NCBI GenBank assembly: GCA_965240325.2
Contig: OZ251222.1
Location: 4,712,001-4,776,000, forward strand
Length of the DNA stretch: 64,000 bases
Reading direction: 5' to 3'
Origin: Rebecca billardiae RCC1528
Lineage: Eukaryota; Protista; Haptophyta
The translations under genes and the position numbers were made by a program. Under the pieces are notes generated by a model. It had not been told where the DNA came from and ran no database searches. It saw nothing but the letters and a program-made list of their open reading frames with translations. Every line of letters starts with the position of its first letter. Position 1 is the first letter of the stretch. Of this stretch, positions 2,932 to 31,303 are shown one piece after another.

Positions 2932-3436
2932 TATGGGGCGATGGCCGACGCGACGGGAGTGGCGGGTTTGGCAGTCTGCGGCGGTTATCGCGTTATGACT
3001 GCCGGCGCCGCTTCGCCGCCGCCCGATACCCTCCTCCAGCGCCCCTCCGACCGCACCCCCGCCCGGACGGGCTCGGAGCTCGGAGCTCGCAGCGCGCCCC
3101 CGGACAGCGTTCCGAGCGTGTGGCAGCTCGCTTTTGGCGCGGACCGCAGAAAAGTGAGCGCGCGCCGGGAGTTGACGGGCAGTGACCGGCTTTGGCGAAC
3201 AGGAGCGAGTTTCGCCCAGCAGCCGTCCGCTTTCCCGCCCGACCGCACGGCGCACCTCGCCCTGCCCGACCGCCGACCGGACCGCCGCCCGACTACCAAA
3301 CCCAGCCGACGGGCCACGCTTGGCGCCGAGCAGCCGCACGGACAACCAGCTGCGCTCCTCCGCCTCCCGCCCGCCCTCCCTCGGCGTTGGATCGCCGCGC
3401 CGGGGCAGGGTGCGGCTTGAGTCAGCGTCCGCGTGG

Positions 3437-3552
3437 GGGCGGGCGCTGTCTCGCCGCCCGGCCCCCCGTGACGTCTGGCGGCCCCAGGCAAGCTAGGCAG
3501 CCGCCCAACGTAAACACCGGACCGCCATAAGGCGGAGCGCGACGCGCGCGGT
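3437..3552 (+). repeat. Split direct repeat, copy B2 (116 bp); probable 3' terminus of the element
   Basis: Identical by eye to 2816-2931. Confidence 0.95.
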
Positions 3553-3613
3553 ATAGACTCGTGATGGATTCGGCGGAGATGAGATCTCGCTCTTCCGGCC
3601 TCAGTCGCCCGCC

Positions 3614-4621
3614 ATGGATTTCGACGCGTCCGTCGGCGTCGGCATTACGCTGCGCAGGCGGGACTACCAGCACGAGCTCGAGAGCCGGGCGTGCGCGGCG
3701 GTGCCGACGGAGAGCCACCCGCTCCAGCCGCTGCTGCTCCCGGGCCCGCCCGAACGCCGCGCCACGGCGACGCCGCCGGCCGCGCCCGCCGCCGTCGGCG
3801 CGGAGCGCGCGCCGATACCGCAGCCGGGCCGTCGGCAGAGCTCCAGCACGGCGCGGGAGCTCGAGAGCGTCGAGCTTGGGCCGCTGGGCGCAGACCCGCT
3901 CTCGGCGCTCGCCGCCGAGGCGCAGCTCGAGGACGAGCCGCTCGGCGCCGCGGGCAGCGCGAGCGGCCACGGCTCGGCGGCGGATGTGTCGCTCGCCGCG
4001 CCGCCGGACGCCGGCCTCGCCGAGCTGGCCGAGTCGAGCGGCGGCGAGGAGGAGGGCGACGGGAGCGACGTGCTGCGCGCGTGGGCGCGTAGGCGCGCGG
4101 CCATCATGCGGCAGCACGTCGCCGTCGGCCAGATCGCCATGAGCCGCGCGCCGCTCTCAGCATCAGCGGGCGCGAGCGCGGGCGGCGGCGGCGGCGGCGG
4201 CGGCGCAAGCCTTGGGCTTATCCCTCCGAGCATGAGCGGCGGCGGCGACGAGGAGCTGGGCCGCCGGCCGTACGCGCGGCCGGTGTCGATCGTGTTCGAC
4301 TCGCGCGTGCGCCGCCGCCTCGACCAGCTCGACGTGCCCGCCAGCGCCACCGCCGACGAGGGCGTGACTGTGCAGCTGACGCAGGCCGAGCTAGCGGACA
4401 GCATCGGCCGGCTGCGCGCCGAGCTGCGCGCCGCGTGGGCGCGCGAGGAGCGCGTGCGCGCGCTGCGCATCGCGATCCAGGCGGCGACGGCGCTGAACGA
4501 CGGCGTGCGCCTGCCGCACTTCTTCCCGCACGTCTGGGTGCTCGTCACCGAGCTGCTCGACGAGCTGGGCGAGCTGGTGCACGCGCGCATCGCCGCGAGG
4601 GTGCGCGCGGCGCGCGTGCCC

Positions 4622-4654
<33 letters not shown>

Positions 4655-6845
4655 GGCAGCCGGCGGGCGTCGCGCGCGTCCGCGTCGTCCGAGGGCGCGG
4701 ACATGGTGGAGAACTGGCTGCACAAGGTCTCCTCCATCCGCGAGCTCGTGCCCCGGCTGTACGTCGAGATGGCGCTGCTGCGCTGCCACTCGGACGCCAG
4801 GGCGGCCAGGGGCGGCGGCGGGCGCGCGCGCGGCGGCGCGGAGGGCGGCGCCTGCTCGGAGCCGCAGGGCGCGGGCGCGCCGGCGGCGAGCGCGGTGCCG
4901 CTGCGCCTCGCGCGCGCGATCCGCGGCATCTCCAACCCGCTCTCCGCCGCGTACGCGCGCTGCTACCTCATGCGCCGCGTGCTCCTCCTCGCGCTGCCGC
5001 CGGCTCTCACGCAGCTGCCGGGCGCGCGCGCGGCGCCGGGCGCGCGCGCGGCGCCGGGCGCGCGCGCGGCGCCGGGCGCGCGCGCGGCGCCGGGCGCTTG
5101 CGACGCGCTGCCGCCGGCCGTCGCGGCGCTCGAGCTGGGCGCGCGCGCCGACGGAGGCGGCGCGCCGAGCGCGACGCCGCCGTTCGTCGAGCCGTGGCCG
5201 CTCGCCGAGTGCGCGGCCGCCGCGCGGTGCGCGCTGTGCGACAGCCTCGACTCGATCGGCGCGCACCTCGAGCGCGCGGGCGCGGAGCCGGGCGCGGGGC
5301 CGGGCGCGGGGCCGGGCGCAGGGCCGCGCGGCGCGGCGGCGGCGGCGGGCGGCGGCGCGCCCGGTGGCGGCAGCGGCGGGCGGGCGGGCGCGCGCGGCGG
5401 CGGCGGCGGCGCGGCGCCCTCGGCGCCGCTCGGCGCGCCCGAGCTGTGCGCGCTGTACTGCACGGCCCTCGAGTGGCTGCTCTGGTGCGACGCGGCCGCG
5501 CACCGCCACTCCGCACACGCGTTCGCGGCCGCGCTGCGCGAGGTCGAGGCGCGGTGCGCGCGCACGCTGGCGCTCGACTGCGCCCTGCGCGCGCTGCGGC
5601 CCGAGCACGTGAGCGCGCACGCGCTCGAGCTGCTCGGCGCGATCGCGCGCGCGCACCCGCTCGGCTGCGCGCGGCACGTCTGCCTCGAGTCGCTCCTCCG
5701 CGCGCTGCGCGCCCGCCCGCCCGCGCCGCGCGCGATGCGCGACGCGCTCGCCGCCGTGCTGCGCGCCGCGGCTGAGCAGGGCGACGACGGCGCGTGCGCG
5801 CGCGTGGGCGTGGCCGCGTTGCAGCTGACGCTGGACGCGGAGGGGCGCACGGCCGAGGGGGCGGAGGGCGGGGCGGGGGCGCGCCCGCCGCCGCCGGGGA
5901 GCGCCGTGCTCTCCGCGCAGGCGAGCGCGCTGCTGAGCGACGTGCTCAGCCGGTGCAGCGGCGCGGCGGCGCGCGCCGACGGTTCGGGCGGCGCGCCGGG
6001 CGCGGCCGGCGGCGGCGGCGGCGCGGGCGAGGCCGAGCGCGGCGGCTGGGCGAGCGCGCTGCCCGCCCTCGCCGCCTCGCTCGTGCACACGCACGCGCGC
6101 GCACACGCCATCGGGGCGCTGCTCTCCGACGCGCGCTTCGGGCTGCTCGTCGGCATGCTTCCCGCGGGGCCGGCGCGCGCGCACGCGGCGCGCGCGACGC
6201 TGCGCGCGTGCGCCGCGCAGCGGCCCGCGCCCGCGCTCGCGCCCGCCACGGACGGCGCGGGCGACCCGAGCGCGCCGCCGGACGCGCGCGCCCTCGCGCT
6301 GCTCCTCCAGCTCAGCCGCACGCTGCACGACGCCCTCGACTCCGCCACGCCCGCCGCCGAGCTCGCCGCCCTCGACGAGTTGCTCTGCGCCGTGTGCGCG
6401 CGCGTGCACTTCGTGAGCGGCGGCGGCGCGGCGTGCGCGGCCGCGGCCGCGGCGGGCGGCTCGCGCGCCGGCCGCGCCGCCGCGTGGCTGGGCGCGACGG
6501 AGGGCGAGCTGGGCTTCCTGTGCGAGTGGCGCGCCGCGTTCCCGCGGCTCGACCGCACCAAGGCGGCGCTCGTGCGCCGCGCGCTCGCGCTGTGCGCGCG
6601 GCTGCACGCGCTCGGCAGCGCGGCGGGCGGCGCGTCCAAGCGCGCGGCGCGCGCGCGCGCGCTCGCGCACGCGTGCGCGGCGTTTGCGCACGTGAGCGCG
6701 CCCGCGGTGCGGTGCGCGCGCGCGCGGTGCGAGCTGCTGCTGGGCGGCGCCGCCGTCGCCCTCTCCTGCGCGCTCGTCGGCCAGGCGGACGAGATGGCGC
6801 GGCTGGCGCTGCGCTCGCTGCCAGAGGCGGTGGCGGCCGCCTCGC

Positions 6846-6903
<58 letters not shown>

Positions 6904-18734: not shown

Positions 18735-21700
18735 ATGGAGCACACGGATGCGGAGGCGGGCCCGCCGCAGCAGGGCGCGCGCTTGCGCCACCTGGAGGAC
18801 GCAGGCGTCCTCTCGCGCCTCACGATGTGGTGGATGGACTCGCTCATGCGGCTCGGCGCGTCCAAGGACCTGGAGATGGTCGACCTGTGGCGGCTGATGG
18901 ACTCGCAGACGGCCAAGCACCGCGGCGAGCTGCTGGCGCGCACGTGGGCGGAGGAGAGCGCGACCGCGCACGCAGCGGGCAAGCCCGCCTCGCTCGTGCG
19001 CGTGTGGCGCACGATCCACGGGCGCACGCTGTACACGACCGGCGCGATGCAGTTTGCCCAGCAGCTGTTGCAGATCGCCCCCTTCTACGTGCTGCGCGAG
19101 CTGCTCACGTCGATCACCGAGCAGCGCGGCGTGGTGGACGGGCTCATCTGGTCGGTGGTCCTGGTCTCGCTGCTGTCGGTGCGCACGTTCGTTGAGAACC
19201 ACTACTTCCGCATGATGTGCGCGCGCGCGCGCGCGCGCCGGGTGGCGCTGCGCGTGAGCCGCGGCCCGCGCTGCCCTCCGCTGCGCGTGCGGCGCGCGTG
19301 TGCTCACGCGATCCGCGCCGCCGCGCGCGCGCCGTGCGACGTCGCGCAGCATGACGTGGGCGCTCGAGCTGCGCGCGAGCGTGATGCACTTCGTCTACTC
19401 CAAGGCGCTCGTGCTCACGCCGACCGCGCGGCAGGCAAACTCGCTCGGCCAGATGGTCAACCTGATGCAGCTCGACACGGAGAAGCTGCTGATGAGCGTC
19501 GCGATGCTGCACCAGGCGTGGGCCGGGCTGTTCAACATCGTGCTGTGCGTCGGCTCGCTCATCTACGTGATCGGCCCGTCCGCGCTCGCCGGCGTCGCCA
19601 TCATCCTGCTGCTGATCCCCGTGTCGGGGTACCTGACTAACCTGATGCGCCGCTACCAGCGCGACTCTGCAAAGTTCACCGACGAGCGCGTGAAGGTGAT
19701 CAACGAGGTGCTGCAGGGGATCCGGATCATCAAGTTCTACTCGTGGGAGTCGTCGTTCCTCCAGCGCATCCACGCGCTGCGCGACCGCGAGCTCTCCAAG
19801 CTGCGCTCCAAGGCGATGCTGAAGGCGCTCTCATCTGTCTTTCTGCACGCCGCGCCCGCGTTCACCACCATCGCCACGTTTGGCGTGTACGTCGCGGCGG
19901 GCAACGAGATCTCGAAGGCGAACGTGCCGGTGATCTTTACCGCGCTCGCGCTCTTCGCGCAGCTGCGCATGCCGCTCATGATGTACCCGATGGTGCGCGC
20001 GGCGCGGGCGGCGCGCATCGCGGCCCGGCCCGCGCGCAGCGCCCGCGTGGCCCTGTGTGGCGCCGCGCGCGGCGGCTCGCTCACCCGTCACGCCCCGCCC
20101 CGCCCCGCCGCCGCGGCTTGGCGCGACGCGCGCGCGCAGGTGCTGGCGATGCTGTCCGACGCGCGGGTGTCGGTGACGCGCCTCGAGCGCTACTTCGCGC
20201 TGAAGGAGCTCGAGAGCGGCAGCGCCGCCACGCGCCACCCGGAGGCGGCGCGCGTGCACGTGCGCATCAGCGAGGGCACCTTCAGCTGGGACCCCGAGCT
20301 CACCACCGACGGCTCGTCCGGCCGGCTGGCGGACATCGGCGCGGGGAAGGGGAAGAAGGGGAAGAAGGAGGGGCCGAAGGGCGCGCCGGCGGGCAAGGAC
20401 GCCGGCGGCGCGGGCGAGCAGAGCGGCTCGCAGCGCCGCACGCTGCTCGGCCGCGGCGGCAAGGGCAAGGGCAAGGGCAAGGGCTCGGACGCGGCCGCGG
20501 TCGCGTCGAGCGTGCCGCCCACCGGCGCGACGCCGGACAAGGGCCTCGCGCCCGTGCCGGACGCCGCCGAGGGCGCGCCCGCGGCCGCGGCGAAGAGCGG
20601 GCCGACGCTGGTGGAGGTGGACTTCACCGCCGAGCCGGGCAAGCTCACGATGATCACCGGCGCGGTCGGCTCGGGCAAGAGCTCGCTCCTCTCCGCGCTG
20701 CTCGGCGAGATGCGCGTGGACGGCGGCAGCGCGCGCGTGGACGGCTCGGTCGCGTACGTCTCGCAGCACGCGTGGATCCTCAACGCCACCGTGCGCGAGA
20801 ACATCCTCTTCTTCGCGCCGTACGACGCGGCGCGGTACGACGAGGCGGTCGCGCTCGCGGCGCTCACGCACGACCTCGACGCGCTGCCCGCGGGCGACGC
20901 GACCGAGATCGGCGAGCGCGGCATCAACCTGTCGGGCGGGCAGAAGCAGCGCATCTCGATCGCGCGCGCGCTGTACGCGCGCGCGAGCATCGTGGTGATG
21001 GACGACCCGCTGTCCGCGCTGGACGCGCACGTCTCGCGCGCGATCTTCGAGCGGTGCATCAAGGGCCACCTGGTCGCGCAGGGCCGCACCGTGCTGCTTG
21101 TCACCAACCAGATCCAGTTTGCGCACGAGGCGGACCACCTCGTCGTGCTGCGCGAGGGGCGCGTGGCCGAGGCGGGCACGTACGTGCACCTGCTCGCGCG
21201 CGACGGCGACTTCGCGGCGCTGATGCGCTCGATGCGCACGGACGGGGGCAAGGGGGGTGAGGAGGGCGAGCGCGGCGCCGCGCCGGCCGAGGCCGACGCC
21301 GACGCCGACGCCGCCGCCGCGCCGCCGCCGCCGGCGGCCGCCGCCGCCGCGCCGCCGCCGCCGCCGCCGCCGCCCGCGGCCAAGCCCGGCGCGGCCGCGG
21401 CCGCGGGCGGCGCGGCGGGCGGCGCGGCGGGCCCCGGCGCGGCGGCGCCGTCGGGCGCGCTGATGCAGCGCGAGCAGCGCCAGCGCGGCTCGGTCAAGTC
21501 CTCGGTGTACGCCGCCTACTTCCGCGCGGCGGGCGCGAGCCACCTCGCGCTGCTCGTGCTGCTGCTGTACGCGGCCAACCAGGCGAACATGGTGCTGAGC
21601 GACGCGTGGCTGAGCATCTGGAGCGAGGGGACGGCGTTCCCGGGGCAGACGATGACCTTCTACCTCGGCGTGTTCGTCGCGCTGGGCGTCACCCTCTCGC

Positions 21701-23486
21701 TGCTCACCTTTGTGCGCACGCTCGTGTTCACGTTCACCGGGCTGCGCGCGTCCAACCGGCTGCACGAGCGCCTGTCGCACGTCGTGATGCAGGGCACGAT
21801 GGCCTTCTTCGACACGACGCCGCTCGGCCGCATCATCGCGCGCTTCGCGACGGACATGAACAAGATCGACGAGACGCTGCCGCACGCCGTGGAGATCGCG
21901 CTCTTCTGCGTCTTCTCCGTCGTGGCGACGTTCCTCGTGATCTCGGTCGTGACGCCTTGGTTCCTGCTCGCGGCCGCGCCCATCCTGTACGTCTACTTCC
22001 GCGTGCAGACCTACTTCAAGAAGACGGCGCTCGACCTGAAGCGGCTGGACCAGCAGGCGCGCGGCCCGCTCTACTCCTTCTTCTCCGAGACGCTCGCCGG
22101 GCTCGCCTCGATCCGCGCGTTCGCGCGGCAGGACACGTTCGCCTCGAGCATGGAGGCGCGGATCGACAACTCGACGCGCGCGCTGTGGGCGCAGAAGATG
22201 ATCGAGCGCTGGCTCTCGCTGCGGCTCGAGGCGCTGGGCAACGCGGTGATCGGCGCGTCGGCGGTGGCGGGCGTGTTCGCGCAGGACACGTACCCCGGGC
22301 TGATCGGCCTCTCGCTCGCCTACTCGTTCCGCGCGACCGGGCTGATGACGTTCATGGTGCGGCAGGTGACGGAGGCGCAGACGCAGATGACCGCGTCCGA
22401 GCAGATCCTCATCTACGTCAACACGGTCGACACGGAGGCGTCGATCACGGAGGAGACGACGGCGGCGCTCGCGGCGCGCTCGCGCGGCGGGCTGCTCACG
22501 TCGAAGGCGGACAAGCACGCCGGCCGCGCGGCGCAGCACCGCGCCACCAACACCGCGCTCACCGAGATTGCAAAGCGCTCGCGCGAGTGGCTGCAGCGCG
22601 GGGAGGTGGCGTTCGAGGCGGTGTCGATGCGCTACCGGCCGGGCCTCGAGCTCGTGCTGCAGGAGGTCTCGTTCACGATCCCGGCGGGCGCGAAGGTGGG
22701 CGTGGTCGGCCGCACCGGCTCGGGCAAGTCGTCCACCATGCTGCTGCTCATGCGCATGGTCGAGCCCGCGGCGGGCGCGATCAAGATCGACGGGCGCGAC
22801 ATCGCGTCGCTCAGCCTCGAGCAGCTGCGCGGCGCCATCTCGATGATCCCGCAGGACCCGGTGCTCTTCTCCGGCACGGTGCGCTCGAACCTCGACCCGT
22901 TCGACCTGCACGCGGACGAGCGGGTGTGGACGGTGCTCGAGCGCGTGCAGCTCGCCGCCGCCGTGCGCGCGATGGGCGGGCTCGAGGCGGAGGTCGCCGA
23001 GTACGGCGAGAACTTCTCGGTGGGGCAGCGCCAGCTGATCTGCCTCGCGCGCGCGCTGCTGCGCGAGGGCAAGATCCTGCTCATGGACGAGGCAACCAGC
23101 TCCGTCGGTGCGCGCGGCGCGCGCGCGCGCGGCGGCGGCCCCCGCGCGCGAGCCGGCGCTGACCCTGCCTCCCCCGCGCCGCGCCCGCCGCGCGCACAGA
23201 CTACGAGACCGACCAGCTGATCCAGACGCTGATCCGCAAGGAGTTTGCGAAGGCAACAGTGATCACGATCGCGCACCGGCTCAACACGATCATCGACTCG
23301 GACAAGATCCTCGTGCTCTCCGACGGCCGGCGCGCCGAGTATGACGCGCCGCACGTGCTGCTCAGGAACGAGCCGTCGGACAGCGGCGCGGGCATCCTGA
23401 GCAAGCTCGTCAACGAGACTGGCCAGCAGTCGGCAGCGCACCTGCGTCAGGTCGCACAGGCCGCACACGCGCAATCTCAGCAGTGA
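18735..23486 (+). CDS. ABCC/MRP-type ABC transporter (TMD-NBD-TMD-NBD); introns 19217-19349, 19993-20139, 23108-23199
   Basis: [32 protein letters not shown]; DEATSSV|DYETD after splicing; two TM bundles. Confidence 0.95.
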
Positions 23487-25049
23487 TCTTATTTCGACGA
23501 ACTTTCGAATAAGGCCGTCCGCCATCGCTGCTGTCGTCCGTTGATGATGTCGTATAGTCGCTATTGCGTCGTTAGCTCAGGCCTCAGCAGCACGCAGTGA
23601 CACGCGTCCGGTCCGCACCGGCACCGAGTCGTAGTCGGCGTGCAAGGCTACAAGCACGGCGGCCGGCGAGCTGCAGACCGGCGCCGCTGGGCCGCCGGCT
23701 TGGAGTTGGAGTTGGGATGGCTGCGTCATCAAGCGACGTTATTCGTACGTACGCCGTCCGGACCCGGGGCGAGCCGAATGACTATACTACTACGACCTGC
23801 GACTCTATATATATATATATATATCATCATCAGAACATTGTAGTCCGAGCAGCCTATCTAGCAGTTAGTCGTCACTGGACGATGGCCTGATTGGTGGCAG
23901 TGATCAGTGCCGGCGAGTACTCGGACTCGGTACGGACGAGTACTCGTCTGGCACCGTGCCGCGTGCGGCCTGAAGCGTAGTCGTGCCCGACGACTAGTTT
24001 GAGAGTATCATGGTCGTCTAGAAAGAAGGAAGCAATCAGATGATGTGCAATCGAGTCCGTACCGCGCCGCCCGGCGAAAGCCAGCCTCGCCGACCCCACC
24101 ACAATGGCACAAAGGTCGGCGCGCCGCGCGCAGTCAGATGTCCGCGTCGGCCACGGATTGGCGGCTGCTCGTCAGCCCGCCTTCGGCCGTTTCCGCTCAC
24201 CTGAGGCCTCGTCGGAGCGCACGTCGCTACACTCGTAGTGTAGGCGCGCGAAGCCGGACCCTGTGCGTCACCGACGCGTGCAGGGCCGAGCTGCTCGCGG
24301 CCGCCTTCTGGCAACGCAGTCGGCGCAGGCGCGCAGCCGGGCTGGGTTCCGTACTTGTGCAGGCGCGCCCTCTCCACGCTGGACGACTAGCGGCCGTCGC
24401 CGCTGCGGAGGCTTGCAAGCGTCGACCGCATCATTATATTCTGCAGCCCGCGTGGCGAGTTCGCGTGGGTACGCCGCACGACCTTGATGAACCTCAGAAC
24501 CTGGGCCCCGCCGGCCGCCGGCCGCCGGCCGGGAGCCCGGGAGATTTTCGATCAAGAGGGGCTGCCGGTTGATGGACGAGTGATTGACGACAAGTTCGAT
24601 CATCAGAACATTTTGAATTTTAGTAATTAGGACCAATATTATAAGCAGATTCGTCTATCGCTTCGTTTGTGATTCATTAGATAATCGGGTCGACACACAT
24701 ATATATACTAACGACGTGGTATACATATACATTACGGCCCGCCATATAGTAACTCATTAACGTAGCGACGACGATTATCAATGGTCGGTTGGCGGTTGCT
24801 TGATTTTCCCGGTGGGGATGGACAGATGCATCGGTTCGCGATTCACCCACAGTTGCCCTCCGGCTGATTCGATTGGCCGTCGGCCACCTAGCCCGTGAAT
24901 CGAGCTTCGGAGATTCCACAAGCTGGGAGCCAGACTTTGATCTGGGGTAGACAGGTTATGAAACACCCTCACCCCCTGTCCACAAGCCAGGGGCCGGCTT
25001 GGGCGCGAGCAACCTCACTCTTTGGATCGTGCGAGGCGAGGCGCCAGGC

Positions 25050-28000
25050 ATGCGCGCTGTCGACGAGGGCGCGTCGGCGCCCGACCCTCCGACTGAGCTG
25101 CACGGCCTCCTGCCGGGCGAGACGTTCATCACCGCGCTCGAGCGCAAGCACGTCGGCGTCGTCGTTGTGGCCGGCGCCGTCGCCTTCTACCTCGCGGCGC
25201 TCGGCGCCTGCTTTGCGACGCTCGGCGCCGCGAGCGAGCCGCTGCTCCCGCTCGAGCGCCAAGCGGCGCAGGCCGCCGGGGCGGTGCTGGTGGTGAGCGT
25301 GGTGAGCCAGCTCGCCAGCGGCCTGCTCCCCTCTCGCCGCGGGACGCCCCGCACGATGGCTGACGTGGCGATGCTCGCGACGAGCGCGATCGCGGCCACG
25401 TCCAACCTGCTGATGGGCACGATGGACACGCCGATCCTGGTCGATCCGATCACCGGCACGTCCGAGTACATGGTGCGCTGGTGCGAGTGGACGGCGCTCG
25501 CGTTCCTCATGACCTACGTCTGCGAGGCGACGAGCGAGACCGATGCGCTGGCGCCGCTCAAGTTTGCGAGCGTGATCGGCGTCTCGGCGGGCTGCGGCGC
25601 CGTCTTCCCGTTCTGCACGAACGTGTGGGTCTGGGGGGCGGCGATGACGCTCTCGTTCGTGCTGTACTTTGGGCTCATCCCGCGCACCATGCAGTGCCGC
25701 GCCGCCTACCGCGACGCCGTGAAGGAGTGCACGTGCCCGTCGCACGTGACGAGGATTGTCGCGCACAAGACGAGCTACGACCTGGCCCTGTGCTGCTCCG
25801 TGATGTGGACGCTGATCACGCTGGACTACTGCGTGTCGTGGGCGGCGGCGGTGTACCAGGGCGAGGCGTACGGCACCGGCGCGGCGCGCCCGCAGTGGCC
25901 CTTCATCGCCGACTGCGTCCTCGACGTGGCGGCGAAGCTGCTGTACGCGCGCGTGATCGCGCGCGCGCACGAGCACGTGCCGCGCGAGTCGCAGCGGCAG
26001 CAGGTGCGCTGGATCCGAGAGGCGATGGACACGGTGTGGGCGGGCGCGCAGGACGCGGTGATCCTCTCGGAGATGCGACACGGCGGCCGCTCCGCGCGCA
26101 CCATCGCCTCCAAGGGCCTCGCCCGCCTCGTCGGCCCCGACGTGGCCGATTGCTGGTCTGCGTGGCACGCCCACCCGCTCGAGTCGAGCGCTGCGCCGCG
26201 GGACGGCTCGGCCGACGCGGCGGGCCGTGACGAGCCGACGCCGATGTCCACGCCGGATGGTGTGAGCCGCTTGTCCTCCTCCCAGCAGTCCCACTCGTCC
26301 TCGCCGGCGTGCGCGAGCCGCTTCTCCCCCTCCACGTCCCCCTCGCCCCTCCACCGCTTCCACTCGGCGGGCAGCAAGCCCGGGTACGCGCTGTCCTCGC
26401 TGAACGCCGTGTCCGAGCTGTCTGAGACGGCGAGCGTGGCGTCCATGGGCGGCGCGGCGGCCCTGCTGCCGCCGTCCAAGCAAAGCGTGCACGCGGCGCT
26501 CGAGCAGCTCGTCGTCGACGCGTGGGCGGTCGCGACGGCCGAGGGCCACACGTTCACGGTCAGCGTGCTGCCGACCGCGCGCGCGTGGGCCCCTAGCATC
26601 TCGGAGGAGGCGGAGGGCGGCGGCAGGGGCGCCGAGCCGTCCCAGGACTTGTCCTACTGGGAGGTGCAGGCGACGCGGTGCGAGCGCGAGGTGGAGGGGG
26701 CCATCGCGAGCCGACGCGCGGTGTTCCTCGTGCTCGTCGTGCGCGACATCACGCAGCGCATGCGCACGCTCGACCTCGAGACGCGCCTCGCCGCCGAGAT
26801 CGCGGAGAAGCAGGTGCTGGCGGAGGCCAACCGCTTCATGCGGCACGAGGTCAAGAACGGCGTGCTCGCCGCGATCGCGCAGTGCGAGGCGCTCGTCGAG
26901 TTCCACGTGCGCACGGAGGAGCGGTTCGAGCGCGAGGTGGCGAGCCCGCACCCGCTCGAGGAGGGGCTCGCCACCCTCGGCTCCGAGCTGCAGCGCACGC
27001 TCAACACGGTGCTCGCCGCGGCCATGTCCAAGGAGCTTGCGAACGGCGAGTACGTGCCGCGGCCCGAGGAGGTGGACGTGGGCGCGCTGCTGCAGAACAC
27101 GCTGGCCGCGGGCAAGGAGCGCTTCGAGCTGCACGTGGCGCCCTCGCCGCTGCCGCGCGTCGTGATCGACCCGCAGCTGCTCTTCTGCGTCCACCGCAAC
27201 GCCATCTCCAACGCCGTCAAGTACGGCTGCAAGTCGAGCCCGATCGAGACGCACGCGTCCGTGGCGCGCGGCACGCTGCGGCTGCGCGTGCTCAACCGGC
27301 CGGGCGCCAACCACGCGCAGCTGCTGGCGCTGCAGGAGCCGGAGGCCGTGTTCGAGCGCGGCCGCCGGCTGCACAGCGCGAGCGCCGCCGAGCAGCGCGA
27401 CCACTTCTACGACAAGGTCTCGGCGGGCGACGGCGGCTGGATCATGCGGCAGTGCGCGCGCGCGCTCGGCGGCGAGTGCTCGATCCGGTTTGAGCGCGAC
27501 GCGAGCGTCTTTGAGCTCAAGTGCCCGGTGGGCGTGGGCGCGGCGGGCGCGGCCGACGGCGCGGACGGGGCAGCCGGCGAGGCCGCGTGCGCGGAGGGCG
27601 CGGCGCCGTTCCAACTGCCCCCGGACACGCTGTGCATCGGCATCGACGACTCCAAGATGCAGCGCGTCATCCTCAAGAAGATGTTTGCCGTGCTCGGCGG
27701 CAGCGCGGAGCTCACACACGTGTTTGGCGGCACGGACGACGAGATCGTGCGCGTGTGCGAGATCGTGCTCGGGCTGGTGCGCGCGCACGCGGGCAGGCGG
27801 GTGTTCGTGATCGGCGACGAGAACCTCGACCTGACCGACGGGTGCGCGTGCACCACCGTCTCGTGCTCCGCCGCCTTCGACGAGCTGCAGGCGCAGCTGC
27901 GGCCGAACGAGCTCGCGCGCACGCTGCTCGTCATCCGCTCGGCCAACGACTCGCGCGCGGACGTGGAGCGGTACATGCGCTCGGCGCACGCGGTGCTGCC

Positions 28001-28541
28001 CAAGCGCGGCTTCGCGAAGCACACGACGATCAGCGCGGTCGCGCCCGTGTGGGCGCGCCGCTTCGGCGGCGCCGGCGCCGGCGCCGCCGTCACGGCCGCG
28101 CACGCCGAGCCGGTCGAGCCCTCGCCCTTCTCGCCGGGGCCGCGCGCTGCGGCGTGCGCGCCCGACGCGGCGGGCGCGGCGCCCGACGCTGCGGGCGCGC
28201 CCTCGCGCTCGCAGCCGGTGTGGCGCGCGTCCAACGCGACGGCGGCGGGCGAGGTGCTCGACGAGATCGCGCGCGACGTGCGCGACGTCGTGCGCGCGCT
28301 GAGCAAGGAGGTGAGCTCGGGCACGCTGCCGTGGGCAGGCGTGCGGCGCGCGCTGATCACGATCAAGGGCGAGCTGTGCAGCCTCAGCGCCGTGTGCGGC
28401 ACGGGCGAGCGGCAGGTCTCCGAGGTCGTGCGGCGCGTCGAGCAGCTGCTCGCGTACGACGAGAACACGCCCACCTTCCGCGTCGCGTGGGCGCAGGTGC
28501 TCGCCGCGGTGGACCGCGCGCTCTTCGCGATGGCGTCGTGA
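25050..28541 (+). CDS. Rhodopsin-like (8-TM) hybrid histidine kinase with PAS-like linker, HisKA, HATPase, receiver and degenerate HPt-like C-terminus
   Basis: Helix C VRWCEW, helix G LDVAAK; RDIT; RHEVKN H-box; NAISNAVKYG; GDGGWIM; IGIDD...GDENL...RSAN...PK receiver; single exon; start could be upstream (ORF open from 24999). Confidence 0.85.
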   Translation: MRAVDEGASAPDPPTELHGLLPGETFITALERKHVGVVVVAGAVAFYLAALGACFATLGAASEPLLPLERQAAQAAGAVLVVSVVSQLASGLLPSRRGTPRTMADVAMLATSAIAATSNLLMGTMDTPILVDPITGTSEYMVRWCEWTALAFLMTYVCEATSETDALAPLKFASVIGVSAGCGAVFPFCTNVWVWGAAMTLSFVLYFGLIPRTMQCRAAYRDAVKECTCPSHVTRIVAHKTSYDLALCCSVMWTLITLDYCVSWAAAVYQGEAYGTGAARPQWPFIADCVLDVAAKLLYARVIARAHEHVPRESQRQQVRWIREAMDTVWAGAQDAVILSEMRHGGRSARTIASKGLARLVGPDVADCWSAWHAHPLESSAAPRDGSADAAGRDEPTPMSTPDGVSRLSSSQQSHSSSPACASRFSPSTSPSPLHRFHSAGSKPGYALSSLNAVSELSETASVASMGGAAALLPPSKQSVHAALEQLVVDAWAVATAEGHTFTVSVLPTARAWAPSISEEAEGGGRGAEPSQDLSYWEVQATRCEREVEGAIASRRAVFLVLVVRDITQRMRTLDLETRLAAEIAEKQVLAEANRFMRHEVKNGVLAAIAQCEALVEFHVRTEERFEREVASPHPLEEGLATLGSELQRTLNTVLAAAMSKELANGEYVPRPEEVDVGALLQNTLAAGKERFELHVAPSPLPRVVIDPQLLFCVHRNAISNAVKYGCKSSPIETHASVARGTLRLRVLNRPGANHAQLLALQEPEAVFERGRRLHSASAAEQRDHFYDKVSAGDGGWIMRQCARALGGECSIRFERDASVFELKCPVGVGAAGAADGADGAAGEAACAEGAAPFQLPPDTLCIGIDDSKMQRVILKKMFAVLGGSAELTHVFGGTDDEIVRVCEIVLGLVRAHAGRRVFVIGDENLDLTDGCACTTVSCSAAFDELQAQLRPNELARTLLVIRSANDSRADVERYMRSAHAVLPKRGFAKHTTISAVAPVWARRFGGAGAGAAVTAAHAEPVEPSPFSPGPRAAACAPDAAGAAPDAAGAPSRSQPVWRASNATAAGEVLDEIARDVRDVVRALSKEVSSGTLPWAGVRRALITIKGELCSLSAVCGTGERQVSEVVRRVEQLLAYDENTPTFRVAWAQVLAAVDRALFAMAS

Positions 28542-29143
28542 CCGGCCCGAGGCTCTCACACGGCCTGTGCATGCAGCATGTACATCCGACTTCACACATC
28601 ACGCTCACTCCTCATCGACCTCATCGTCCTCCATCCTCATCCCGGCTAGGCAATTCGCGGATCGCGGGGCCGCCGCGGCGTTACTACTTCCTCTCCGCGA
28701 GTCAATGACTCTGAGCTAGTCAGCTGTCAGCGCGCACCGGCGGTTGAGCCGCCTCCGCTGACGCCGCTTCGTTCGATCAAGCATGTCGTCAGTCGTCACG
28801 GGACCCCAGTGGTAACTTGGCCCTGCCGGCTGCCGTTTGTGTGACGAGACAGTTCACGGCCTCAGCCACCGCAACGTCGTGAGTCCACGGCCCTTGGTGA
28901 GTCGTCGTGTTTCTCAACTCATCGAACGAGTGTTACTGTCATGCACAATCTCGCCTGCCTGAGCTGTGTGCGTCTCTTATTCTTAGTAAACTGTACCCCC
29001 ATACGGCGAAACTTTGGCCGCGACGCAATATGAGGGAGGACCGGCGGTTACGCGCATTTGGGCCAAATTCTAAACCGGCCCGCAAATCCGCAATCAATCG
29101 AACGGATTGAAAGCCGAGCCCTGCACTGTGCATCAGCCGGCCG

Positions 29144-29714
29144 ATGGCGCACGTCGGCCTGCTCGCTTTGTGCGCCGCGCTGGGCGCGGTGCTCGTCGGC
29201 GGCGCCGGGGCTGCCGACTGCCCGCGCTGCGCCCAGGCGGTGCACGACGTCGCGCCCGAGTCCTACTCCGCGCGCCTCGCCGACCGCTCGCTCGACGTGC
29301 TGCGCGCGGCATGCGATGCGCACAGCGGCGCGTGCGGGCTCGTCGACGCTGACGCGGCGCTCGGGGCCGTGCGCGCGGCGACGGTGCAGAGGCTGCCGCA
29401 GGCCTCGCACTTCCGGCTCGAGGCGGAGATCTCGAGCGGCGCCATCCTCGCCGTCACCGTCGCGCGCCACGCCGCGCCCTTCTGCGCGCTGATCATCGAG
29501 GGCGCGCTCGTGCGCGAGCGGCACGCGCCGGCGGTGCCGCTGCTGAGCCGCCCGGTGCTGATCGACGACGAGCACCTGGTGGACGACGGCTGCCGGAGTC
29601 GGAGTCCGCCGCCGCCGCTCCCGAGGCCGCCGCCGCCGCCGCCGCTGTCGCCGCCGCCGCACCCGCCGCCGTCCAGCCCGCCCAGCCCGCCACCGTGGCC
29701 GTCGCCGCCGAGCC

Positions 29715-29764
<50 letters not shown>

Positions 29765-31303
29765 GCGCCGCCCTCGCCGCCGCCGCCAGAGCTGGTGCTC
29801 TTCATGCTCTTCGGCTACGCGTTCGGCTGGCTCGACCTCCTCGTCCTCCTCCTCCTCCTCCTCCTCCTGCTGCTGCTGCTCTGTTGCTGCGCGCGCGCGC
29901 TGCTCCTCCGCAGCGCGCGCCGCAGCCGCGAGCGCGAGGGGTGGGCGGACTTGGCCGATGGCGGCCGCTCGCGCGCGCCGTGGTGCCCCGGGCTGCGCGC
30001 GCTCTTCTCGGGCGGCCGAGGTGGTGGCGGCCGAGCCACGAAGCGGCCCGCCGACCCCGAGCGCGCGGGCTCGCGCTGGCCCAGCTGCCCTCGGCTGCCG
30101 AGGCGGCGCCCACGCTCGCCCGCGCCGCCGGGCGGCTCCGGCTGGGCTTTGCCCTTCGGCTGGGCTCGGCCGGCCGCGTGGCCGCGCGCGCTCACGCCGG
30201 CGTGCCCGCGCATCCCGCTCTTCCGCAGGCGCGCCGCGCCCGCGGCGCGCCCGGCGAAGGTGGGCCCGGACGACGCCGCGCCGGCCGGCGGCGCGCGCCC
30301 CGCCCAGCCCGCGCGCCCGCCGCCCAGCCTCGCGTGCAAGGCGCCCATCGACGCGGTGTGCCGCTTCTCCGACTCGGACGTTGTCTTCGTGCCGGACGCG
30401 CCGCCGCTCGACTCGGCACGCGCGCGCGCAAAGGCGCTCGCGGTGGCGATGGGCAAGCCGGCCGACCGGGAGGCGACGAACGAGCTCGCCTCCGGCGGCG
30501 CGACCGCCGCGCCGTCGCAGCGCGCGCTCGCGCGCCAGCTCTCCTTTGAGCACAGCTCGACCGTGTACACGCCGAGCGAGCGCGGACGGCGGCGCGCGGG
30601 CGGCGGCGCGGGCGCGGGCCGGCCGCGGCCCGGCGCGGTGCGTGTCGGCGGCGGCGGCGGCGACTGGGCCTCTCCGCGCTCGCCGCAGCGGCGCGGCTCC
30701 GGCAGCAGCCCCGGACGCGCCAAGCAGAACGCCATGGCGGAGTCCATCCTCGCGGAGGCGCGCCGCAGGGAGGCGGAGGACGCCGCGCGCCGGCCGCGCT
30801 CGCCGCGCCGCGACAGCGTCGACAGCGCGCGCCCGCGCAGCCCGGGCGCGGGCTCCGACGGCGCGCGCAGCCCCGGCCGCGCGCACACGCCAGAGGGCGG
30901 CGGCCGGCGCGGCTCCCGCGAGTCGCCCGGGGCGCAGCGCTTGAGCCCGGCGGCTGGCGCGCAGGGCCGGCAGCCGGCGCAGCCGCCGTCGCAAGAGCGC
31001 CCGCCCTCCAGGCCGACACCGCCGCCGTCCCTGGGCTCGTCAGGGCGCTCAGGCTCGGCCACGGGCATGCCGCGCCGGCGCGGCTTCTTCGAGGCCGAGC
31101 GGCAGCCGTCCGCAGACCTCACCGACTACGCCGCCGAGCCCCCGCGGAGCGGCTCGCGCGGGCGCGCTCCGCCGCCGGCGCGCGGCGGCGACGGCAGCAG
31201 CACGTACGCGGCCGGCGCGAGCCGAGCAGGCCGCGGCCCGTCTCCCGCACCCGCTCGCAGCGGGCCCAGCGCTGGAGGCGGCCGGCGGCAGCAGATGATC
31301 TGA
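29144..31303 (+). CDS. Type I membrane protein: signal peptide, small Cys-containing ectodomain, extensin-like Pro/Ser stalk, TM, disordered Arg/Ser-rich tail
   Basis: Hydrophobic N-terminus, SPPP repeats, poly-Leu TM followed by CCC. Confidence 0.65.

Follow-up and report, generated by a model that had tools for sequence, protein, structure and literature searches.

The gene and its reading frame

The window examined here is a 64,000-nt stretch of the genome of the haptophyte Rebecca billardiae RCC1528 (GCA_965240325.2, OZ251222.1, positions 4,712,001–4,776,000 of the forward strand), and all nucleotide positions refer to it. On its forward strand, at 25050..28541, lies a gene whose predicted product combines, on a single chain, a rhodopsin-like membrane domain with histidine kinase and receiver domains and a C-terminal helical bundle. 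According to the list of open reading frames (ORFs), the frame is open from 24999 to 28541 (+), with its first ATG at 25050, and encodes 1163 aa with no internal stop, over the interval given in an earlier, sequence-only reading. We treat 25050..28541 (+) as the complete coding sequence, comprising 1163 aa plus the stop codon in a predicted single exon, on the basis of the ORF list and of collinearity with P0001, a 1216-aa protein from a Pavlova gyrans transcript that aligns over 96% of the gene product (E 1.7e-205). A tblastn search detected one copy of the gene in the window.

The G+C content at the locus is ~65–73%, and long spurious ORFs are present in the other frames and on the opposite strand of the same GC-rich DNA. 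An antisense ORF of 1208 aa (24969–28595, −) spans the whole gene and several ORFs of 250–395 aa occur in other frames, all of them rich in Arg, Ala and Gly. Such ORFs are expected from a G+C content of ~70% alone and are not evidence of overlapping genes. Since an ORF in DNA of this composition means little, it is homology that identifies the frame beginning at 25050 as a gene. Three low-complexity inserts, at aa 376–470 (26175–26459), 833–851 (27546–27602) and 1012–1062 (28083–28235), have no counterpart in P0001, and the last two were modelled by AlphaFold with a predicted local distance difference test score (pLDDT) below 50. Judged from the sequence, the three inserts could be either disordered linkers or unspliced in-frame introns.

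The membrane domain and its conservation

The rhodopsin-like domain, which has eight transmembrane (TM) helices and extends over aa 30–312 (25137..25985, +), was delimited by means of an AlphaFold model, a Foldseek search, structural re-alignment and a comparison of the family profile with the PDB. The model of aa 30–345 (pLDDT 80, predicted template-modelling score 0.77) consists of eight long helices, namely TM0 (aa 32–61), A (67–92), B (103–124), C (141–160), D (167–188), E (192–225), F (231–274) and G (from 283), with a B-C beta-hairpin at aa 127–140 whose strands lie at model residues 98–102 and 109–111. When the TM model was used as a Foldseek query, Rh-PDE ranked first (E 1e-5) and the best 50 matches were all microbial rhodopsins. 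Structural re-alignment to Rh-PDE gave a Z of 22.9 and a root-mean-square deviation (rmsd) of 3.1 Å over 256 of 262 residues, spanning model residues 4–281 and placing the model helix 3–32 (aa 32–61) on TM0 of Rh-PDE. Superposition on bacteriorhodopsin (BR) and sensory rhodopsin II (SRII) gave a Z of 20 and an rmsd of 2.6–2.8 Å over 210–220 residues, the chance level for helical bundles being Z ~13, and a shape search of ESM-Atlas with the same model returned a Bac_rhodopsin cluster as its best match. These models support an 8-TM enzymerhodopsin-type fold for the N-terminal domain. The eight hydrophobic segments noticed in the sequence-only reading appear in the model as the eight helices of this fold, and the comparison of an AlphaFold model with microbial rhodopsins that it had suggested, once run, gave a predicted rhodopsin fold with Z values of 20–22.9.

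Helix C of the domain carries RWCEW (25476..25490, +; aa 143–147), in which R143 corresponds to BR R82, E146 to BR D85 (the counterion) and W147 to BR W86, and which both a PDB phmmer search and the family profile aligned onto RYAEW of Rh-PDE (7cj3). Helix G carries DVAAK (25923..25937, +; aa 292–296), where D292 is equivalent to BR D212 and K296 (25935–25937) is the putative Schiff-base Lys. The family profile aligned D292 and K296 with DIVAK of ChRmine, which holds that channel's counterion Asp and Schiff-base Lys, and when the model is aligned structurally to BR, the offsets at the ends of the alignments bring model residue 267 (Lys296) onto BR Lys216; the equivalent of BR A215 is also present. 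Profile alignments thus confirmed Arg, Glu, Trp, Asp and Lys at the positions of BR R82, D85, W86, D212 and K216. In helix F, the spacing of the motif WTLITLDY (25806..25829, +) suggests that W253 corresponds to BR W182 and Y260 to BR W189, with I256 and T257 replacing Y185 and P186, as they are replaced across the family. The aromatic residues W147 and W253 of the pocket are therefore kept and position 260 remains aromatic, and L150 and A151 occupy BR-89 and BR-90 in the alignment, with no Ser or Thr at either position. The sequence-only reading had placed RWCEW, DVAAK, WTLIT, the H-box His and the N and G boxes correctly, and the pocket it had called atypical, with L and F at T89 and P91 and WTLIT in helix F, is exactly as it described and is a trait of the whole family.

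Word-based searches recovered few relatives only, from haptophytes. When a profile of a few haptophyte relatives was run against 1.84 billion cluster representatives (50% identity clusters), it returned 332 representatives at E ≤1e-3 and 248 at ≤1e-10, many of the 332 proteins being 800–1400 aa long. The idea of a lone oddity of one alga was thus not upheld, as the family comprises at least 332 clusters in haptophytes, diatoms and pelagophytes. A search that used only the kinase region recovered proteins nearly all of which bear the same TM domain.

To describe conservation, residues were counted in about 150 representatives among the matches listed, which share at most 50% identity with one another. 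R143 was found in 159/159 and K296 in 143/143 of these sequences. Elsewhere in helix C, W144 was kept in 148/159, E146 in 151/159 and W147 in 145/160; further on, G183 was present in 144/161, P187 in 154/161, W195 in 146/161 and W253 in 148/153, while position 292 was occupied by Asp in 110 and by Glu in 25 of 143. At BR positions 85/89/90/96 the family reads E-L-A/S-(L/M/V), with E-L-A/S in about nine of ten members, among them the metagenomic cluster P0008 described below. In place of BR P91 the family has F or G, and in place of Y185 it has L/F/I (aa 256); P186 is V/T (257) and W189 is Y/F/W (260). The resulting family signature is R-W-x-E-W-x-x-L-A-F/G in helix C, W-(T/S)-x-(L/F/I)-(V/T) in helix F and D-V-x-(A/S)-K in helix G, and on these aligned sequences the motifs of the membrane domain are not a product of chance.

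Detection of this relationship depended on the depth of the profile. A single-sequence phmmer search of the PDB with the TM part was marginal (Rh-PDE, E 0.018), a six-sequence profile lost this weak match, and a strong one returned only with a 90-sequence TM profile, which matched Rh-PDE (E 2.4e-7), cyanorhodopsin-II (3.7e-4) and ChRmine (2e-3) and gave 21 matches to E 1, all of them microbial rhodopsins. An ESM-Atlas feature search with the TM domain yielded scores all below 0.8 and was not used. Because the profile matches only rhodopsins in the PDB, we conclude that the TM domain is homologous to microbial rhodopsins; its Lys is under absolute constraint.

Linker, kinase, receiver and C-terminal bundle

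Over 26001..26774 (+), helix G continues into the cytoplasm and is followed by a PAS-like linker that ends in VVRDITQR. Blocks of this region are kept across 40 relatives, the last of them being VVRDIT(E/Q)R, and a Ser-rich insert (26175..26459, +; aa 376–470) is specific to the window protein. A profile of the linker matched only PAS sensors, at non-significant values (LOV-HK PAS, E 0.4; FixL chimera, E 1.3). A firm PAS identity was not accepted at E 0.4–1.3, and the linker may at most be termed PAS-like from its sequence. The Ser-rich linker with an RDIT ending reported in the sequence-only reading stands, and its PAS assignment is retained as tentative.

The linker is followed by a DHp helical hairpin (26751..27041, +; aa 568–664), with the phospho-acceptor His599 (26844–26846) in RFMRHEVKNG and with helices at residues 24–82 and 91–120 of the C-terminal AlphaFold model. 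In 39 relatives this His is near-invariant, and the E and N of RHEVKNG are invariant. A CA domain of the HATPase_c type (27066..27539, +; aa 673–830) was assigned from profile, fold and a weak Pfam match; direct reading located the N-box NAISNAVKYG (HRNAISNAVKYG, aa 715–726, +), a G1-like NRPG (aa 749–752, +) and a G2-like GDGGW..LGG (aa 793–808, +). The alignment of the 39 relatives after aa 545 shows F-x-R-H-E-x-K-N at the H-box, N-A-x-x-N-x-x-K-Y-G at the N-box, N-x-P-G-x-x-H and G-D-G-x-W...G at the G-like boxes, and D-D, D-E-N-L, S and K kept in the receiver. Pfam, run with the whole protein and four pieces of it, gave one match, to HATPase_c (E 0.017, below the cut-off), and the kinase family profile matched YycG, in its catalytic domain (E 1.2e-4), as well as KdpD (3e-3). 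The C-terminal model (pLDDT 80.9) comprises the DHp hairpin, an alpha/beta CA domain, a (beta-alpha)5 domain and a four-helix bundle, with two disordered inserts between them. Structural comparison of this model gave Z 18 against HK853 and ShkA, and against isolated CA domains Z 17 (rmsd 2.3–2.6 Å, ~140–148 residues). The histidine kinase with its H-box and N and G boxes, as first read from the letters, is thus supported both by the YycG and KdpD profile matches and by the HK853 and ShkA folds.

The receiver (27609..28067, +; aa 854–1006) contains D866/D867, the phospho-acceptor D923 (27816–27818), S964 and K985, which are nearly invariant in the family and which the model places, just as CheY does, where strands beta1, beta3, beta4 and beta5 end. 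It was modelled as a (beta-alpha)5 domain with a pLDDT of 92–98, and it superimposes on CheY (6tg7) with Z 15.4 and an rmsd of 2.1 Å over 129/130 residues. A PDB phmmer search with the receiver piece alone returned nothing relevant; at the profile level, Response_reg matched 4/39 relatives at E ≥0.05 and CheY was matched at E 0.88. Since sequence searches barely detect the domain, the receiver call rests on the fold and the conserved residues, and the description 'canonical receiver' in the sequence-only reading holds for the fold and the active-site residues and not for the overall sequence.

The protein is predicted to end in a four-helix bundle (28233..28538, +; aa 1062–1162) that is homologous to the HPt domain of the family but lacks the phosphorylatable His. 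The four helices were modelled at residues 518–618, with a pLDDT of mostly 76–96. The His of the HxxKG motif is present in 24/31 aligned family tails (as LHxLKG, in the second helix), whereas the window protein reads ITIKG and has no His after aa 1018; the same His is also replaced in 6/30 relatives with an aligned tail, that is, in 7/31 when the window protein is included. The aligned tail of P0004, a 531-aa relative, gave a weak Pfam Hpt match (E 0.1), and Pfam Hpt matches 5/39 relatives. P0001 keeps the tail His, and its own Pfam Hpt match (3.3e-9) falls in an extra C-terminal domain that is absent from the window protein. For the tail of the window protein itself Pfam gave no match, and a PDB search of the tail piece returned designed helical repeats only. 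On the evidence of the aligned tails, the window copy probably ends in a degenerate HPt. Of the helical tail and full relay that had been described from the sequence alone, the tail can now be specified as a predicted four-helix bundle, probably of HPt type; the relay, with ITIKG in place of the His motif, is not full.

Named sources of the family include the pavlovophytes Pavlova gyrans, Rebecca sp. and Diacronema lutheri, the coccolithophore Chrysotila/Pleurochrysis, the diatom Rhizosolenia setigera and Pelagophyceae sp. CCMP2097. Relatives occur in the MMETSP transcriptomes of P. gyrans, Rebecca sp. and R. setigera, and are therefore expressed, and the D. lutheri relative KAG8462663.1 bears the UniRef name 'HPt domain-containing protein'. 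The P0008 cluster (43 sequences, 1281 aa) comes from coastal marine metagenome contigs of the SOLA station of up to 741 kb. In its contigs L001–L004 (ENA), which are compact, apparently intron-free and of 55–58% G+C, the gene is at 3001–6846 and adjoins a eukaryotic CLPTM1 gene and a BioY gene, which points to an abundant picoeukaryote as host. We considered P0008 as a member of the known Ot-HKR type and rejected this assignment, as P0008 has E-L-A where Ot-HKR has E-T-T.

Some members depart from the full domain order. P0004 (an MMETSP transcript) lacks both kinase and receiver and consists of the TM domain, the PAS-like linker and an HPt-like tail, and P0002 and P0003 (JGI, 758 and 800 aa) have a 470-aa soluble N-terminal extension followed by the TM domain, with nothing after it. 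P0005 and P0006 are adjacent gene calls on a 5435-bp JGI contig that together make up one TM domain, split between helices E and F. The split is likely due to an intron, which would mean that some family members are not intron-free.

Two other long ORFs flank the gene on the same strand. Upstream, at 19300–23220 (+), an ORF shows the hallmarks of an ABC transporter, with a Walker motif GRTGSGKSS, a signature LSGGQKQR and membrane domains of ABCC/MRP-like type; its central part is rich in Ala and Arg and looks like an in-frame read-through intron. Downstream, an ORF at 29144–31303 (+) contains extended SPPPP/PPSPP runs ahead of a hydrophobic segment rich in Leu, and could encode an extensin-like or cell-surface protein or be a composition artefact of GC-rich DNA.

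Relation to known systems and proposed function

The best structural and sequence match to the membrane domain is Rh-PDE of Salpingoeca rosetta (PDB 7cj3, 7d7q), at a sequence identity of 15%. Both have a Glu counterion on helix C and a helix G that reaches far into the cytoplasm, whereas Rh-PDE has a phosphodiesterase output and keeps T and P at BR-89 and BR-91 (IITCP), where the window protein has L and F. With SRII and bacteriorhodopsin the domain shares the seven-helix core and the equivalents of R82, D85 (as Glu), W86, W182, D212, A215 and K216. It differs from them in adding TM0, in having no proton-donor carboxylate (V157 at BR D96), in the replacement of T89, T90, P91, Y185 and P186, and in being fused to a kinase rather than acting through a separate transducer. 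The soluble part has the DHp-CA-REC-(HPt) order of hybrid kinases of the ArcB/BarA/GacS type, with ShkA, HK853 and GacS as top fold matches, and departs from these in its rhodopsin-fold membrane sensor and, in the window copy, in a bundle without phosphorylatable His.

The combination of an 8-TM rhodopsin, DHp/CA and a receiver on one chain, with a cyclase as an optional addition, is already known from the histidine-kinase rhodopsins (HKRs) of Chlamydomonas (COP5-12/2c-Cyclops), Ostreococcus (Ot-HKR) and Guillardia (GtRh4-10), with which the family also shares the Arg, the helix C carboxylate, the helix G Asp and the Lys. As noted in the sequence-only reading, the gene has no cyclase. The further proposal that this absence marks a new photoreceptor class was not borne out, since only some HKRs carry a cyclase (PMC12558739) and published tables include cyclase-less HKRs with a receiver from Ostreococcus and Micromonas as well as from Guillardia, a cryptophyte (PMC7693036). 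What separates the family from described HKRs is its L and A at BR-89 and BR-90, where 43/47 known modular rhodopsins keep T/S-T, a helix F without the (Y/F)P pair, a TM domain undetected by Pfam Bac_rhodopsin, a PAS-like module inserted between rhodopsin and kinase, an HPt-type bundle at the end (without His in the window copy) and its hosts, which are haptophytes, diatoms and pelagophytes. At BR 85/89/90/96, E-T-T-L is found in Ot-HKR and its relatives from Ostreococcus, and the Guillardia histidine-kinase rhodopsins have Q-T-T at the first three of these positions (PMC7693036), so that, by these residue tables, a family with E-L-A/S is distinct in sequence from both described groups. We found no description of the family in the full-text literature, a body of text that leaves subscription journals largely outside, so an earlier description is possible. 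Transcripts of rhodopsin-histidine kinases were absent from the results reported by a metatranscriptome survey of the open ocean (PMC8017926), and a 2026 survey listed 17 uncharacterised rhodopsin clusters in detail too scant for matching the family to them (PMC13739731). The gene thus probably belongs to a divergent, Pfam-invisible branch of HKRs with its own pocket signature, PAS-like insert and HPt-type end, in an architecture that is not new.

Taken together, we consider that the gene probably encodes a divergent histidine-kinase rhodopsin, that is, a one-chain photoreceptor with a hybrid histidine kinase. What the computations show directly is how the domains fold and are ordered, what they are homologous to and how well the named residues are conserved; retinal binding, light dependence, the sign of regulation and the downstream partner are inferences. 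The invariant Lys favours a retinal pigment: retinal would be held as a Schiff base on Lys296, with Glu146 and Asp292 as a counterion pair stabilised by Arg143, and light would isomerise the chromophore. The resulting movement could travel along helix G, which extends far into the cytoplasm, and by way of the PAS-like module reach the DHp coiled coil, where it would alter autophosphorylation of His599 by the CA domain, and the phosphoryl group would then pass from His599 to Asp923 of the fused receiver. Because the fused bundle has no His, the output would have to reach a separate protein, either an HPt or a response regulator, unless the bundle serves as a non-phosphorylated docking or regulatory module. 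HKRs that have been characterised are light-inhibited (PMC12558739). As to the availability of retinal, other haptophytes, one Pavlovales strain included, are listed with BR-type rhodopsins (PMC10865886).

Several observations weigh against a light-driven kinase. Pfam Bac_rhodopsin (PF01036) gave no match to the TM domain at E ≤10 and matched 2/45 long relatives, at E 0.002, and we found no pigment, spectrum or kinase assay for any family member in the literature. In the pocket, BR T89 is replaced by L, T90 by A, P91 by F, Y185 by I and P186 by T; at BR-89, Ser or Thr is found in 43/47 known modular rhodopsins (PMC7693036), where the family has L. That Lys296 points into the pocket is presumed from the alignment register, and in the kinase the G1 box reads NRPG instead of DxGxG, so that ATP binding is not assured. 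At the level of the gene, the single-exon structure, the start codon and the coding status of the three inserts are predictions from the sequence.

The pocket replacements could also be read as the mark of an opsin-derived sensor that keeps the rhodopsin fold, binds no retinal or binds another ligand, and informs the kinase of some signal, be it chemical, ionic or from the membrane. Five canonical pocket and hinge residues are replaced family-wide, neither Pfam nor the language-model feature search recognises a rhodopsin, and the PAS-like module between sensor and kinase could be a ligand-binding input. A presumably buried TM7 Lys that is invariant in all 143 listed sequences is, however, hard to explain without a Schiff base, the more so as it occurs together with an invariant Arg and near-invariant Glu, Asp and Trp at BR 82/85/86/182/212, and characterised HKRs with more degenerate counterion sites do work, Cop6 and Vop6 lacking D85, D96 and D212 (PMC7693036). 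We therefore regard a sensor for something other than light as unlikely. Less probable still is that the protein is an ordinary HKR, of the green-algal or 'noncanonical' Ot-HKR type, disguised only by high GC and divergence and with nothing new about it. The order 8 TM, histidine kinase, receiver is indeed the same, cyclase-less HKRs are known, and the P0008 cluster, with its compact, intron-poor contigs, could come from a green picoalga; yet the E-T-T of Ot-HKR kin and the Q-T-T of Guillardia (PMC7693036, Table 2B) contrast with E-L-A/S in about nine-tenths of the family, which Pfam-based photoreceptor surveys would miss and which the full-text literature searched does not describe.

Relaxed constraint in a multi-copy family could also have left a decaying or signalling-dead paralogue, in keeping with the change of the HPt His to Ile, the lack of any His in aa 1019–1163 and the three inserts absent from P0001. 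Against this, the 3.5-kb frame is open, the catalytic residues of sensor, kinase and receiver are all intact, and the HPt His is lost in 6/30 relatives whose other domains are conserved, so that its loss resembles a functional variant more than a sign of decay; we judge decay to be very improbable.

Beyond the probable assignment to the histidine-kinase rhodopsins, a broader proposal can be put forward only tentatively, with somewhat less than an even chance in our estimate: that the family forms a separate, large and unrecognised rhodopsin clade, serves haptophytes, diatoms and pelagophytes as their main two-component photoreceptor built on a rhodopsin, has an unusual photochemistry and mostly forms a full one-chain His-Asp-His relay. 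The unusual photochemistry, and with it unusual helix-F mechanics, would follow from the missing Thr89 hydrogen bond and Pro186 hinge.

Diatoms, haptophytes and pelagophytes carry out much of the primary production of the ocean. Their photoreceptors are inventoried for the most part with Pfam rhodopsin models; recent surveys select rhodopsins by their Pfam domains, and since Pfam matches 2/45 members, and weakly, surveys of this kind would overlook the family. With its HPt tail devoid of His, the window copy offers a natural comparison, within one family, between complete and truncated relays. The altered pocket, without Thr at BR-89, Pro at BR-91 and BR-186 or an aromatic residue at BR-185, could give new spectral or kinetic properties, which would make the family candidates for optogenetic control of phosphorelays. 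If retinal is bound, these algae would hold a large overlooked set of light-controlled histidine kinases, comprising at least 332 clusters at 50% identity.

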